From Andalucia godoyi And28 (Eukaryota > Protista > Jakobida): a DNA stretch of 64,000 nt. Each line of letters opens with the position of its first letter. Positions within the stretch are counted from its first letter, which is position 1. The stretch is taken from contig VRVR01000018.1 in the NCBI GenBank assembly GCA_009859145.1, forward strand, positions 5,688 to 69,687. The letters run 5' to 3'. The notes beneath the pieces are model-generated. The model saw only the letters and a list, made by a program, of their open reading frames with translations, did not search any database and was not told where the DNA came from. The translations under genes and the position numbers were made by a program. This document shows positions 3,010 through 43,543 of this stretch, piece after piece.

Positions 3010-4629
3010 CTAGTCATCATCGTCGTCATCTTCTCTTTCCCCCGGATGTTGCTGAGCAGCGTGGATGGTGGCGACGGCTGGTTGTGGCTCTCCAGTGTCT
3101 GATTCTTCAATGACCGCTTCATGCTCTTCGCGGAGTCCCGTCGATTCGCCCGTGCTTTCTGGGGCGTACTCCAATCCCCGTTCTCTGAACTTGCGAATCG
3201 CTGCAGCTTCCTTTTCGTCTCCTGCATGAACATGGTCAAGAAGCCTCCGCCTTGAGACCGGCTGGCGGTCCAAGGAATCTGTGAAGAACGACAGAGAATG
3301 ACCCCACGCACCTTTGATTTCAGAAGATGTGATTTGGCGGTAGGCCTTGCACATCAAGTCGACAAGATTCTCTTTTGATTGCGGAAGAGTCCTCACGACA
3401 ATCTGGGTGAAATACCATTTCCACGTGCCGAAGACTTCTTCACAAGGATCGAGAAACGGCGAATACGCGGGCAAAAAGCACATTTTAATGCCTTCTGGGA
3501 TTTCAAATTGCACTATTTCTGCTTTGTGAATAGCACAGTTGTCCTGAACAATGAGCTGTTTTGGGTCGCCTTTCTTGGGAATCCCGCCAGTCTTCTGCAA
3601 CTCGGCGAAGAGATGTCTGAGAAAATCCGCGTATGTCTGTGCTTTGACTCTGCCGTCGTAGCACTCGAAATACATCATCCTCTCTTTGTTCACTGCCACG
3701 ACTGCAGAAATGTTTGGAAGATCGATCTTTCCAATCGGCACCAGCGGACTGCACCCTTTCACACTGATGCCTTTGTTTGGCAGCACGCAAACATTGAAAG
3801 GAGTCTCGTCGATGAGTATTGCATTGTCGTACGCTGCGCGTTTCACATTCGACATCATCTTTGCGTACTGGTACCTTGCATCGATAATTCTCGGCAAATT
3901 TCTGCTAAGTGGGACAGGATAGAAGTCGGCTGCTCGGAATCCCAGATGCACATGCATCCAGTGTTGCAGCACCGCAGCCCCGTTTTCCAGTTCGTGCTGT
4001 TCCAGTTCCGGAAACTGCTTCTGCATCATTCCCATTAGATCTCTGTAGTGGAGAGTGTTGTCGATTACCAGGTGCTGCGCTGCCCAAAGAAGCTGATCAT
4101 CAGAAAGCAGTCGAGGTCGTCGGCATTTGGGATTCATCGCTCCATGTGCGAGCGGCTGAAGCGCATCTTCTCCGCGTTTCGCACGCTTTTCTACGCGGTG
4201 ATATGTCTGGTACAGAGCCGCTTCCTTGTGATTCAATACTGCCGCAAGATCGCGCAACGTGGATGTCTTGGTCCGCATGCTGATCCAGACAACTTCCTTG
4301 TCTCTCTGGCAGATGGTGTCCCTCGGTTGCCGATGCTGCGCCACTGCATTCGCATTTTCTTTATTCTCTTCACCAGAATGCCGTTCCTCGCCTTCCTTTT
4401 CTTCCTCTTTCTGTTCCACGCTGGTGTCAACAGCCACTTTCATTAAAAAGTGGCGGACCCCGGATTGGACGGCCGCCTCCCTGGCTTTGTACGCCAGTTC
4501 TGCTTTTGCAGCTGTTTCCCTGTTTCGTTTCTCTTGCTTTTGATGACGCAGTCTCTGCGATTTCGACATGAAATCCGTTAGAGTGGCATGGCTGAGCTCT
4601 GGGAAGTGGTCTTCGGGTAGCGGAGGCAT
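3010..4629 (-). mobile_element. IS630/Tc1-mariner superfamily DDE transposase ORF (DD33E), 539 aa; no TIRs found
   Basis: ILIDETPFN, IVQDNCAIHKA and FLPAYSPFLDPCEEVFGTWK match the DDE_3/IS630 motifs. HTH-like region upstream; ORF intact. Confidence 0.85.
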
Positions 4630-5060: not shown

Positions 5061-6228
5061 CTAAATATCATCAAACCAGACAGTGTGCTTGGCATCCGGA
5101 CCTGTGCCAACGCACCAAATGGGGACGCCGCAGTCTTTTTCGATGGTCGACAGCCAATCGCGAGCGTGCGTGGAAAGAGCAGACGCTTCCGTGACACCAG
5201 CACATTCCGGAAAGAGAACATCCAGTTTGCAAATTGCAATTTTCGTGGCAGAATTTAACATAATTGCCTTCTGCGCAAGGACCGTTGAAAACGGAGCTGC
5301 TCGGCGAGGACGACCCGTGTTGACTCCGTACTCTTGCCAACCTCGTTTGATCGTCTCTTCTGGCGTGAGTTCGCCCTCAAGGAATCCCTGTCCGACACGA
5401 GTTACATATGCCTTGAAGACAATGACAACATCTTTGACGTGTTTGGGGCCAACTCCTACGTCGGCACAGAGCGACGAAGCGCACACGTCTTTGGACGTGC
5501 AGAAGGGATAATCGCCGTAGTAGAGCGAAAGGAACGTTGCTTGGGTACCCTCAATGATGACCTGCTCTTTTCGAAGCAGAGCTGCATGAATCAGCGAAGG
5601 CACGTCACCAACGTACTCCTTCAGACTATCCCAGTTCTTTGCAATGGGTCCTTTGCGCAAGACGTGATCAGAGATGGCCATACCGGATCCAGATCCTGTG
5701 GAGCCCACGATTTTCATCAGATGTTCATCAGCTTTTTCCCGAACACGGTGTTCCTCTGCAATAATGGCGCAATTCTTGTCAATAACCAATCGGCCAGGCC
5801 CAATTCCGAGATCAACAATCTCTTTGGCAGTGATGATTGGATCCACGACAACCCCAGGACCAATCATCAACGCAGCAGAAGGCACGTCCAGGGCCGCAGA
5901 CGGTACCTGCCGAATTCCAAACTTCTTCCCCTGGAACTCGATGGTGTGTCCCGCATTCGTGCCAACTCCCCCTCTTGCGACAATGGACGCCTTCAGCTTA
6001 TGTGCCACGGCAGCGACGATCCGCCCTTTTCCTTCGTCCTGTGAGTCGAAATATCGTAAGACGCTTTCAGTTCTTCAACCTCCCACAACAGCAAGTGCCA
6101 ACAATCAACAAAAAGAAAAAAGAAGAAAGAAAACCAACACCACCCCCCAAAATGAAAATGAGATGTATATTTCAAAAACATACACCAAAAAACCCTCCCA
6201 CAACAACAGTCACGCAAGGTTCAACCAT
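5061..6228 (-). CDS. purA: Adenylosuccinate synthetase, short archaeal type, two exons, 340 aa
   Basis: Exon 1 6228-6184 (MVEPCVTVVVGGFFG), GTATGT...CAG intron 6183-6039, exon 2 6038-5061 (DEGKG...RGGVGTNAGHT, EGTQ, YGDYPFCTS, TGRPRR, KLDVL). Splicing restores the P-loop GGFFGDEGKG. Confidence 0.93.
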
Positions 6229-6558
6229 TCTCCTGATCTTTGTTGGAGGGAGGAAAAAATGAAAATAAATGAAGAAAACGTGCACAATCGAAAAGGCAAA
6301 AGGGGGGCGCGGGCTGGCAAAAACGTAGAAAAAGGAACTCTCTGGTGCAAGACCTGGGGATTGTGTGATCGGCTTGAGGTCTCGAGAATCTCTGAGTTTC
6401 TCGTCTTTCTGTTGAACTCGCAGCAAAATCAACAAAACCGGAAAATCGAGGCCAAGAAAAGAGCCTCTCCAAAAAAACAAAAAAAAAACAAGGAACTCAT
6501 TCATCTACCAAGCGTCTGATTTGGATATTTGGATCATTTTGAAAAGAAAAGAAAGAAA

Positions 6559-16236: not shown

Positions 16237-16788
16237 CTCAAGCCCTGATCAAATCAGAAAGAAGAAAGAAAGAAAGAAAGGAAAAAAGGGGGAAAAAAAG
16301 ACGTGCCGCGAAAAAATAAAAAGAAGACGCAAAAACCAAAACCAAACACACACACACACACTCTCACACACACACACATACACACAGAAGCCCACCTTTG
16401 GATGTGTGTGCATGTGGTGCAGAATTGCAATCTCGCTTGCTCTTGAGTGATCTAGCATCCGTTGATGCTACGGAGAGGTGCGGCGCACCTGAGTCGGGCG
16501 AGAGAAAGCCTGAGCGCAAGAGCCCGCAGCCCGCGCGCGCACACTCGTCCCTCCATTGTTTTTAAAATATGTATATATATTTGAAATAAATTTTAAATTC
16601 TCTTCTTTTTTCTTCTTCTCTTTCCCACTTCTGTTCTTGTCTGAGAGAATCGGGATAGGCTTTAACGTTGGTTTTCGCCGCTGTCGGAAACTACGTTTTG
16701 GGAAATTTGGGTTCTTCTGTCCAGTTGACAACGGAGGAAATAGAAAAAGAAAGCCAAGAGTCGGGACGGAGTTCATTTGGTTTTCGCC

Positions 16789-18583: not shown

Positions 18584-19317
18584 ATGGATATCGGGCGGTT
18601 TGTGAGAACGATGTATCGTCAGATACTGTCGGACAGCAGGCAGCTTGGTCGTGTTCGTGACCGCGAGTATGTGAAACGCGTCGTCCAGTTTTCGTTTCGG
18701 AGCCACATGCAAGAAGAAGCCGAAGATGTCGACCAGCTCATTCAGCAAGGACTGCACGCAATACGCCTTGTACGAACTGCTCTTCTCGATCCGGAGTCTT
18801 CCGAAGCACGCGTTATTGAGAAAATGGCAGATTTTCACGCCCAAAAGGTCGGGCTTCTGTCGCATTCGTCCTCTGTCGATATTGGTGATCTAGTCGCAAA
18901 CCCCGTGTTTCCCGTATGTCTCTTTCTTTTTAAAGTTGGCTCTTTTCCTTTCTTCTTTTCTGCGTCGCATTGTAGGATTGGAATCGCCAAATTGTTCGTT
19001 TGCTCTCTAACAAACCATCAAATGCACTATTCTGGGGACAGGTGGAGGAAAAGATCGAGGATTCTGCATTCGCCGAAGTCGGCAGAAGAGTGTATGCGCA
19101 GCTTCGCATGGACGAACGCACGGCATTTCCTCCGTCCTTTCTGCGATCTGAGCTTGATAGTGTGCTGGCCACTGAGACTGCTTTGGAAGAGATGTCGGAC
19201 AAGGAGGGCATTGAGCTGTTTGAGAAGCTCCGGGCCTCTGTATCGGATCCTTTGCTGGGAGCTCCGTTGCAACAATCCAACGATGAGAGTAACGCGAACG
19301 GTTCATCCAGGCGTTGA
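18584..19317 (+). CDS. Two-exon protein with an N-terminal LYR-motif-like region
   Basis: Exon 1 to 18913, GTATGT...TAG intron 18914-18975, exon 2 18976-19317 in frame. N-terminus VRTMYRQILSDSRQL...YVKRVVQFSFR resembles Complex1_LYR. Confidence 0.6.
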
Positions 19318-24208: not shown

Positions 24209-25418
24209 TTCGTCACGAAAGCTTCACAACAACAGCAGCAATGAAATGATATCTTTTTAAAACCCCAGTGGCTCTCGAGAAGTGGATCCTCGGGTTGTAT
24301 GCAGCGGAGATGGTGACGCCTCCTCGGAATATACACGTAAGTGTGGTTCGCAGTATGTGCTTGGAACGCGGTGTGCGACCGTGTTAACTGTATCAATAGG
24401 GTACGCTCGAGTCACTCGTGGTATGTGCTCGGGGTGTTCGTCAAGCAGACTTGAGAACAGAGACGCAATATCAAGGGGACAGGAGAAAGAAAAAGGAAGG
24501 AAGGAGAGGCAGAAGAAGAAGGGGAGAAAAAAACACCGATACAGTAAGCAACTGAGAAGAAAAGAGAGGAATGTGGAGAACAAAAGAGGGCAGCAAGGAA
24601 AAGGTCGAGAAAACACTCAGACCAAAGAGATACACAGAAAGAGAGAGAGTATGTATGTGTGTGTGTGTCTCTCTCTCTCTGCGTGTGTGTGTGTGTTTGC
24701 CGGACGAAAAGGGTTTGGCGCACCCTGGCGACCAGCGCGGAAAACCATCCGCCACATTCTCGATTGACCGGGCTTCTGTTTTGCTTTTGTTTTTACAGTC
24801 GCTGGAATGGTCATTTGTCGCGCCGTTGCCACTTATTGCGATACGATGAAGCAATCTAAAGCGCACGAAAACAAAAAAAAAACACTGCCACGCGCCATGC
24901 CGCATGCGTTTGGTATCTTAAGCAACTCCGTCACACGATGCCCGATTCGTTTCGCCCCATTTTGATCATGAAATCCCTATATAAACACGCCGCCGCGTTG
25001 CATTATGCATGTTGTTGGGTTGCAACATTGATTATGGGTGATCAGCGATGATTATCCGCGGTTACTGTACAATGTATGCGTCTTCTTCTTCTGTTGCTTC
25101 TATTGCTCGTGTTCTTAGCTGCCTTTTTCTTCTTTTGGTTTTTTATCACTTCATAAACAGAAACAGAAATACAAGTCATCCATGAAAGGAGAGGACGGAA
25201 GGGGAGAGGAAGACAAATGCAAAACTGCTGGGCAGGTAACGTAACGACTGACAAGTCATCAAAGAATGGAGAGGGAGGAAAACAAAACATCCAAGCATGC
25301 TCGGAAAAACAAGGCAGTGAGCAATATTCAAAAACGAAAAACGGCAATTTTTTTAATAAAAGGAAAGGAAAGGAATGGAATGGAAAGGAATGGAATGGAA
25401 TGGAAAGGAAAGATATTA

Positions 25419-42922: not shown

Positions 42923-43543
42923 ATGGGGCGATTGGCACGAACACGACACCATGTGAATGATAAAGGACACAGTCGAGGTCTGAAAGCAAAGAACCGGACT
43001 CCCGATGCGGATCAAGTCGAAAAGTATCTCGAAGCAAAAGCAAAGGGAATCAAACTCCCCACGTTGGACGCAAATGCACACAATGTCTTGTCATTTCCTA
43101 CTGGTATGTGACTTGCTTCTTTCTAGGACGCTGGAATTCGCACTCTGCCGAAAGTCAATTTGCAAGGAGATGACTGATATTCTAATTTTTGTTTTGATTC
43201 GATTTTGTATTGTTGATGCGTTTTTGGTTCGGATCCGAAACATGGGGTAATAGTTTCAATGTCGGAAAAGAAGATGAAAAAGCTGACGGATGCACAAGTT
43301 GAGCTGGGTCGAGACTTTGATTTGCCGGGCGGTGGAATGCATCTGTGTCCCGAGTGTTCGCGGTATTTTATCGATGCAGACGCGCTTGTGACGCACAACA
43401 AGTCCAAACAGCACAAACAACGAGTCCGACAAATACGGAATACCCCAGCGTATACACTTGAGGAATCAAGGGGGGCTGCTGGACATGGTTCGTATCACAA
43501 GCCGACAAAGAGTACAGGGTCTGCGGCAGAGCCTATGGAGTAA
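42923..43543 (+). CDS. BUD20: Bud20/ZNF593 ribosome export zinc-finger protein, two exons
   Basis: Exon 1 42923-43103 (MGRLARTRHH...KNRTPDADQ), intron 43104-43253 (GTATGT...TAG), exon 2 DLPGGGMHLCPECSRYF...HNKSKQHKQRVR...AYTLEES. Confidence 0.88.

Follow-up and report, generated by a model that had tools for sequence, protein, structure and literature searches.

The 64,000-nucleotide stretch of contig VRVR01000018.1 analyzed here (the window, to which all coordinates refer unless a related contig is named) derives from the jakobid Andalucia godoyi And28 and contains a gene for adenylosuccinate synthetase (AdSS) of the short, archaeal type. The gene occupies positions 6228-5061 on the minus strand and consists of two exons and one intron. 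On the available evidence, this locus (ANDGO_04229 in the public annotation) is probably a single-intron nuclear gene for short-type AdSS that was acquired by an old lateral transfer. This reading is carried by the structure of the gene, the classification of its product, its eukaryotic surroundings and the patchy occurrence of its close relatives.

Gene structure and the intron within the P-loop

Exon 1 (6228-6184, minus strand) spans 45 nt from ATG to GGT, MVEPCVTVVVGGFFG, and comprises the start codon and 14 further codons, as placed by translation, tblastx and DNA alignment. According to an AlphaFold2 model of the protein, its product would form strand beta-1 (residues 6-11) and the first half of the P-loop. 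The spliceosomal intron (6183-6039, minus strand) is 145 nt long, in phase 0, and runs from GTATGT to ACAG with a GC content of 37% and an extended T-rich tract. The intron length leaves a remainder of 1 on division by three, and stop codons occur in the read-through frame. Exon 2 (6038-5061, minus strand) measures 978 nt, i.e. 325 codons and a TAG stop at 5063-5061. It opens with GAC GAA GGA AAA GGG (DEGKG) and encodes the rest of the P-loop together with the motifs NAGHT, GSTGSG, EGTQ, TGRPRR, CKLD and TGP. An initial annotation, made from the sequence alone, had described a 340-amino-acid (aa) product with GGFFGDEGKG and RGGVGTNAGHT and a 145-nt GT-AG intron falling between GGFFG and DEGKG; all of this is read directly from the sequence, with the exon junction lying in phase 0 exactly between G15 and D16.

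The two exons abut without gap or overlap when compared with 12 homologous proteins and with intronless homologous DNA. In a tblastx comparison, exon 1 matched positions 1336-1377 of the metagenomic contig that carries the closest relative (L001), directly adjoining the main match. Because the exons join in this gap-free manner against intronless homologues, the GT...AG boundaries are not attributable to chance. Without splicing, the longest open reading frame (ORF) encodes 315 aa from a GTG start at 6008 and lacks the P-loop, and inspection of the exon 2 reading frame revealed no in-frame ATG upstream of DEGKG. An active enzyme can therefore arise only through splicing; beyond this, the position of the intron within the P-loop presumably has no functional meaning. 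A putative branch-point motif, CTTAC, was read from the sequence at 6056-6060 (minus strand); its candidate branch-point A (6057) precedes the acceptor by 18 nt.

The genome of A. godoyi is compact (~20 Mb), and its annotation pipeline drew on RNA-seq; introns are carried by 12% of 864 curated genes, all of them GT...AG, with a mean length of 151 bp and a range of 55-756 bp (PMC7050145). The 145-nt intron fits both the published size range and the GT...AG rule, and with its boundaries, its size, the frame that it breaks and the exactly homologous protein that results from its removal, it has the properties of an A. godoyi intron. Furthermore, EukProt entry EP00762_Andalucia_godoyi_P003417 (ANDGO_04229.mRNA.1, "Adenylosuccinate synthetase") matches the spliced protein from end to end with 100% identity, and a gene model with exactly this intron is already present in the public annotation.

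Enzyme family and predicted function

AdSS condenses inosine monophosphate (IMP) with L-aspartate at the expense of GTP, yielding adenylosuccinate, GDP and Pi, the first committed step from IMP to AMP. The spliced product matched the Pfam family PF00709 (E 4.5e-70) and passed the equivalog model of short PurA (NF003295/PRK04293) with 436.4 bits versus a cut-off of 368, residues 6-335 covering profile positions 3-330 of 337. Both long-type models failed, TIGR00184 with 292.2 versus a cut-off of 395.55 and NF002223 with 226.6 versus 402. The best solved relatives were the AdSS structures of Pyrococcus horikoshii (2D7U and 5K7X, 339-340 aa), with E 1e-80 for residues 7-335 against 4-333. These results bear out the proposal of the initial annotation that the enzyme is of the short archaeal type. 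In agreement with this, two segments of ~45 residues present in long PurA are missing from the 340-aa protein, which aligned with the 439-aa Legionella enzyme in three blocks separated at query 145->152 (target 154->204) and query 290->294 (target 344->391). The same two deletions have been described for P. horikoshii PurA and for PurZ (PMC8342488).

Conservation was read from alignments of 13 and 75 sequences. The P-loop residues G15-D16-E17-G18-K19-G20 and the motif N43-A44-G45-H46 were invariant or at least 90% conserved in both, as were T129, Q181, R258, R260/R261, D288 and T327-G328 across up to 75 homologues. K286 and P329 were invariant in two alignments (A1 and A3); K286 was not listed for A2. 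The motifs T228-R229-V230-G231, T256-G257-R258-x-R260-R261, K286-L-D288 and T327-G328-P329 were all present and conserved. By homology to D13, K16 and H41 of the Escherichia coli enzyme, we take D16 and K19 to be the P-loop aspartate and lysine and H46 the catalytic histidine. T129 presumably contacts the IMP phosphate, Q181 (the glutamine of EGTQ) and the arginines of TGRxRR (R258, R260 and R261) presumably belong to the motifs that bind IMP and aspartate, and guanine specificity is assumed to reside in K286 and D288 (KxD) and in T327-P329 (TGP).

The AlphaFold2 model, built on the 75-sequence alignment, had a predicted local distance difference test score (pLDDT) of 95.1 and a predicted template modelling score (pTM) of 0.93. 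The top Foldseek match was the fully ligated P. horikoshii chain 5k7x_A, with template modelling (TM) scores of 0.92/0.93 and a root-mean-square deviation of 1.7 A, and ranks 1 to 43 were all AdSS, PurZ or DgsS. Since all motifs of E. coli PurA biochemistry are present and conserved, the most likely function predicted for the protein is that of a canonical AdSS, which joins IMP and aspartate in a GTP-dependent reaction to give adenylosuccinate. The window contains this one AdSS locus and no adenylosuccinate lyase gene.

Relatives and origin of the gene

Nearest relatives were taken from the best 120 matches listed in one protein database. Among these, the closest named prokaryotic homologues were 50-55% identical and belonged to Asgard archaea (Baldr-, Heimdall-, Hod- and Njordarchaeota), Bathyarchaeia and Nitrososphaeria; only one named eukaryote was present. 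In GTDB, with one genome per species, no prokaryote exceeded ~55% identity. The subtype signature GGF[FYW]GDEGKG, EGTQ[AG]T[FY]LS, FKAYVTRVG and RRAAPF is that of the Asgard, Bathyarchaeia and Nitrososphaeria enzymes of 333-340 aa. The initial annotation had called the protein Thermococcales/Methanococcales-like, a label that proves imprecise, given that Pyrococcus has GGQWGDEGKG and RRVGWF. A scan of metagenomic DNA returned, among the matches listed, only archaeal loci at ~50-54% and no new close or intron-bearing relatives. Short AdSS sequences labelled as bacterial were also observed (P0014/P0124, L047 and P0130), from [Eubacterium] cellulosolvens (WP_455364103.1) and from metagenome-assembled genomes of Acidoferrum and Latescibacteria; these may represent archaea-to-bacteria transfers or mis-binned contigs. 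The literature searched contained neither a connection between Andalucia godoyi and adenylosuccinate nor a description of a short archaeal-type AdSS in eukaryotes. Within that literature, the presence of such an enzyme in a eukaryote appears to be unreported, though the gene itself has been annotated.

Closer relatives were environmental proteins, with identities to the Andalucia enzyme of 75% (P0002), 68% (P0003), 66% (P0004), 62% (P0005) and 63% (P0006); P0007 (53-54%) and P0125 (48-50%) also grouped with Andalucia. Two of the sequencing runs in SRA that bear such relatives are environmental metagenomes, from an anaerobic digester and from 'Taisui' soil. Phylogenies were built by neighbour joining from scoredist or gamma distances, on sets of 62 or 169 taxa and with 100-200 bootstraps. 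The short enzymes formed one clade with 99-100% bootstrap support, the eight-member Andalucia clade received 82-95%, and the pair of Andalucia and P0002 received 97-98%. A one-residue insertion (SAALDVPSA) was found in all eight clade members and in none of the archaea examined, while the other indel characters examined were homoplastic. A long stem separates the clade from the archaea, none of which stands out as a close donor.

The Andalucia clade includes at least two eukaryotes. P0002 is encoded on an 8.7-kb metagenomic contig (L001; 50.6% GC) beside genes for ORC3 (ORC_WH_C, E 5e-19) and RNA polymerase I A34, and owing to these neighbours the contig is eukaryotic. A search for homologues of the ORC3-like protein recovered nothing beyond that protein itself. 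As judged by tblastx and DNA alignment, the P0002 gene is uninterrupted exactly at the Andalucia intron site. Because this 75%-identical gene is intronless, the simplest reading is that the Andalucia intron was gained within its lineage after acquisition of the gene.

The surroundings of the Andalucia gene were likewise eukaryotic. Neighbours on the same contig encode a Vps34-type PI3-kinase (divergently oriented, ~330 nt away), eIF2A, MBOAT, Efg1 and a TMEM260-like protein. The codon preference of the AdSS gene correlated with that of the pooled window genes at r = 0.845 (0.70-0.93 for native genes), and its GC content at third codon positions, 0.52, was inside the 0.48-0.69 of its neighbours. 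With a genome-like intron, host-like codon usage and eukaryotic flanking genes, the gene is genuinely nuclear and contamination is excluded. A recent transfer is unlikely.

The initial annotation had left lateral transfer from an archaeon and retention of an archaeal host gene side by side. Old lateral acquisition is favoured here, because a single named eukaryote occurred among the best 120 matches and all structures solved from plants, fungi, animals and apicomplexans are of the long type; such patchy occurrence therefore speaks for transfer. The donor would have been an archaeon with the Asgard/TACK subtype of short PurA, and the gene may have been passed on directly or by way of an intermediate, for instance another eukaryote or a large DNA virus. 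It would have arrived in an ancestor of the small lineage to which Andalucia belongs. Divergence of more than 45% from every sampled archaeon and full codon amelioration suggest that this transfer was old. The intron would then have been gained inside the P-loop codons in a later, lineage-specific step, and its removal would yield the mRNA for the 340-aa enzyme and hence adenylosuccinate synthesis.

Several points weigh against this reconstruction. In the distance-based trees, the archaeal sister group of the Andalucia clade received bootstrap values of only 4-22%, too low to point to a donor lineage. The eukaryotic distribution is that of one protein database and its best 120 matches. Splicing of the intron is predicted from the logic of the sequence and from the public annotation. 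Finally, we know of no enzyme assay for any AdSS of the RRAAPF subtype, this protein included.

An alternative that we regard as unlikely is spread linked to large DNA viruses of protists, on which AdSS of the Andalucia type would travel, sometimes in a purine module with a lyase and an ITPase, either from virus to the Andalucia lineage or from host to virus. The contigs of P0005, P0006, P0007 and P0125 have features reminiscent of giant viruses. The contig of P0007, a basal member of the clade, is 86 kb long (Joint Genome Institute Ga0376277_0001688, L005) and has a coding density of 89%. It consists almost entirely of ORFans and encodes, beside AdSS, a 405-aa FNIP-repeat protein (PF05725, E 2e-71; L005 8767-9984, minus strand), an AAA protein and a PP2C, and may derive from a giant-virus or amoeba-like genome. 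P0005 is part of an array, 93% coding, of short AdSS, adenylosuccinate lyase (ASL_C), Ham1 ITPase and a RING-finger protein (L003 1099-4819 and L087 187-3889), which recurs on several contigs and in several sequencing runs. On the contig of P0006 (L002), an intronless tRNA-Ile(TAT) at 1630-1703 precedes the AdSS homologue and a C5 DNA methylase gene is located nearby. This tRNA was the one hit of Rfam and tRNA scans across the related contigs, which yielded nothing diagnostic. P0006 itself is 570 aa long through a spurious N-terminal extension of ~230 aa that derives from upstream tandem peptide repeats of ~35 residues (2022-2720). However, no giant-virus hallmark gene was seen in the contig stretches examined, a scan of IMG/VR recovered relatives of only 31-33% identity, and FNIP repeats and RING fingers are also known from cellular eukaryotes. 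Furthermore, the closest relative, at 75% identity, is located on a plainly cellular eukaryotic contig.

The lyase genes next to these AdSS genes are of mixed descent. The lyase beside P0005 had its best named matches in Bacteroidota (37-39%), and Andalucia was not represented among its best 120 matches. Co-transfer of AdSS and lyase was thus considered and found no support, and with a lyase of different, Bacteroidota-like origin the module is mosaic. P0125, the most basal clade member (L090 2550-5258), is divergently paired with a lyase of the ADSL_C type; together with the ASL_C lyase beside P0005, this indicates that the adjacency of AdSS and lyase recurs with non-homologous lyase subtypes.

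Vertical retention, in which the gene would be a relic of the Asgard-related archaeal host kept in Andalucia or a jakobid-like lineage while other eukaryotes switched to the long, bacterial-like ADSS, is considered very unlikely. Asgard archaea are among the closest prokaryotic matches at 50-55%, the long stem without a close archaeal donor is compatible with descent from the host, and under gamma distance the nearest neighbours of the clade were Heimdall and Hod sequences. That grouping received only 21% bootstrap support, though, and was missing from the scoredist tree, while Bathyarchaeia and Nitrososphaeria are equally close to the Andalucia enzyme. In addition, a single named eukaryote occurs among the best matches and the enzymes known from plants, fungi, animals and Plasmodium are of the long type, such that retention would require many independent losses.

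It is highly improbable that the protein is a neofunctionalised paralogue resembling PurZ or DgsS and acting on a nucleotide other than IMP. PurZ is short and related to archaeal PurA (PMC8342488), and the PurZ model NF038379 did give a match, but one of 136.8 bits versus a cut-off of 300, while the PurA equivalog model was passed. The structural match was better with P. horikoshii PurA (TM 0.92, 43% identity) than with PurZ and DgsS (TM 0.78-0.81, 25-26% identity), and members of the clade adjoin adenylosuccinate lyase genes. That the locus is an artefact, either an archaeal contaminant or a dead gene with a chance GT...AG, is hardly tenable: the 315-aa ORF on its own could pass for a piece of a prokaryotic gene and archaea supply the closest named homologues, but eukaryote-specific genes lie on both sides on the same contig with indistinguishable codon usage, exon 1 restores the conserved N-terminus without an indel, the catalytic residues are all intact in a model with pLDDT 95, and the public annotation holds an identical gene model.

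Surrounding sequence and comparison with known systems

Between the AdSS gene (minus strand) and the Vps34-type PI3-kinase gene (plus strand) lies a divergent intergenic region of ~330 nt (6229-6558), presumably a bidirectional promoter with the 5' untranslated regions. Translation from an in-frame ATG farther upstream, at 6504, would lengthen the protein by 92 aa of low complexity, rich in F and L; this extension gave no Pfam match, and neither the homologues nor the annotated model have it. Neither a 110-aa upstream in-frame ORF nor two ORFs that overlap the AdSS gene on the plus (antisense) strand (281 and 236 aa) matched Pfam, and these were rejected as coding sequences. Just 3' of the AdSS gene, an intact 539-aa ORF (3010-4629, minus strand) encodes a DDE_3 transposase (Tc1/mariner/IS630-like; E 1e-14). 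A search for terminal inverted repeats around it gave only A/T-rich low-complexity pairs, none of them convincing.

Two further probable introns were located on the plus strand of the window, one of 62 nt in phase 0 (18914-18975) and one of 150 nt in phase 1 (43104-43253), both sharing the GTATGT donor of the AdSS intron and resembling it in composition, with a T-rich tract and 37-39% GC. The exon that follows the second encodes a C2H2 zinc-finger motif. Microsatellites of the types (GT)n and (GT)n/(CT)n are present at ~16360-16381 (minus strand) and ~24649-24690 (plus strand).

If this reading is confirmed, AMP synthesis in A. godoyi and a handful of uncultured relatives would rely on a subtype of AdSS that is otherwise found in Asgard/TACK archaea, and the gene would provide a clean case of a prokaryote-type metabolic gene domesticated in a eukaryote, with ameliorated codons, a eukaryotic promoter context and a gained intron. 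The intronless homologue at 75% identity brackets the time of intron gain in an intron-poor genome. The occurrence of AdSS beside lyase and ITPase genes on dense, ORFan-rich contigs hints at a mobile module for purine nucleotides. Jakobids serve to infer ancestral eukaryotic traits, and it therefore matters whether the gene is a relic or an acquisition. Understanding of the enzyme itself is unchanged, as this is a eukaryotic member of a known family with an ordinary intron. Lateral transfer of metabolic genes into protists is common, and the finding is an evolutionary curiosity of modest weight unless phylogeny shows vertical descent from Asgard archaea.

Among characterized systems, PH0438 of P. 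horikoshii OT3 (2D7U, 5K7X) resembles the Andalucia enzyme in length (339-340 aa), in the same two ~45-residue deletions, in sequence (43% identity) and in the shared P-loop, NAGH, TGSG, EGTQ, TRVG, GRxRR and TGP motifs. The two differ in subtype, with GGQWGDEGKG, EGTQGFGLS and RRVGWFD in P. horikoshii versus GGFFGDEGKG, EGTQATFLS and RRAAPFS in Andalucia, whose gene is moreover nuclear, eukaryotic and intron-containing. The short PurA of Asgard archaea, Bathyarchaeia and Nitrososphaeria shares both the signatures and the 333-340 aa length, whereas the Andalucia clade forms its own branch with its own insertion and with characteristic substitutions, among them ADEHLMK and GSGMA (for GxGPA). 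Long ADSS/PurA enzymes (E. coli 1ADE, Arabidopsis 1DJ2, mouse 1IWE, Plasmodium 1P9B) have the same catalytic residues and core fold (query-normalised TM 0.85-0.90), and the same chemistry is expected of the Andalucia enzyme from its sequence; they differ in being 410-460 aa long, with two extra segments and 24-30% identity. Phage PurZ/DgsS of the 2-aminoadenine pathway is likewise short, PurA-like and thought to derive from archaeal PurA (PMC8342488), but its substrate is dGMP, and the Andalucia protein is nearer to the PurA structures.

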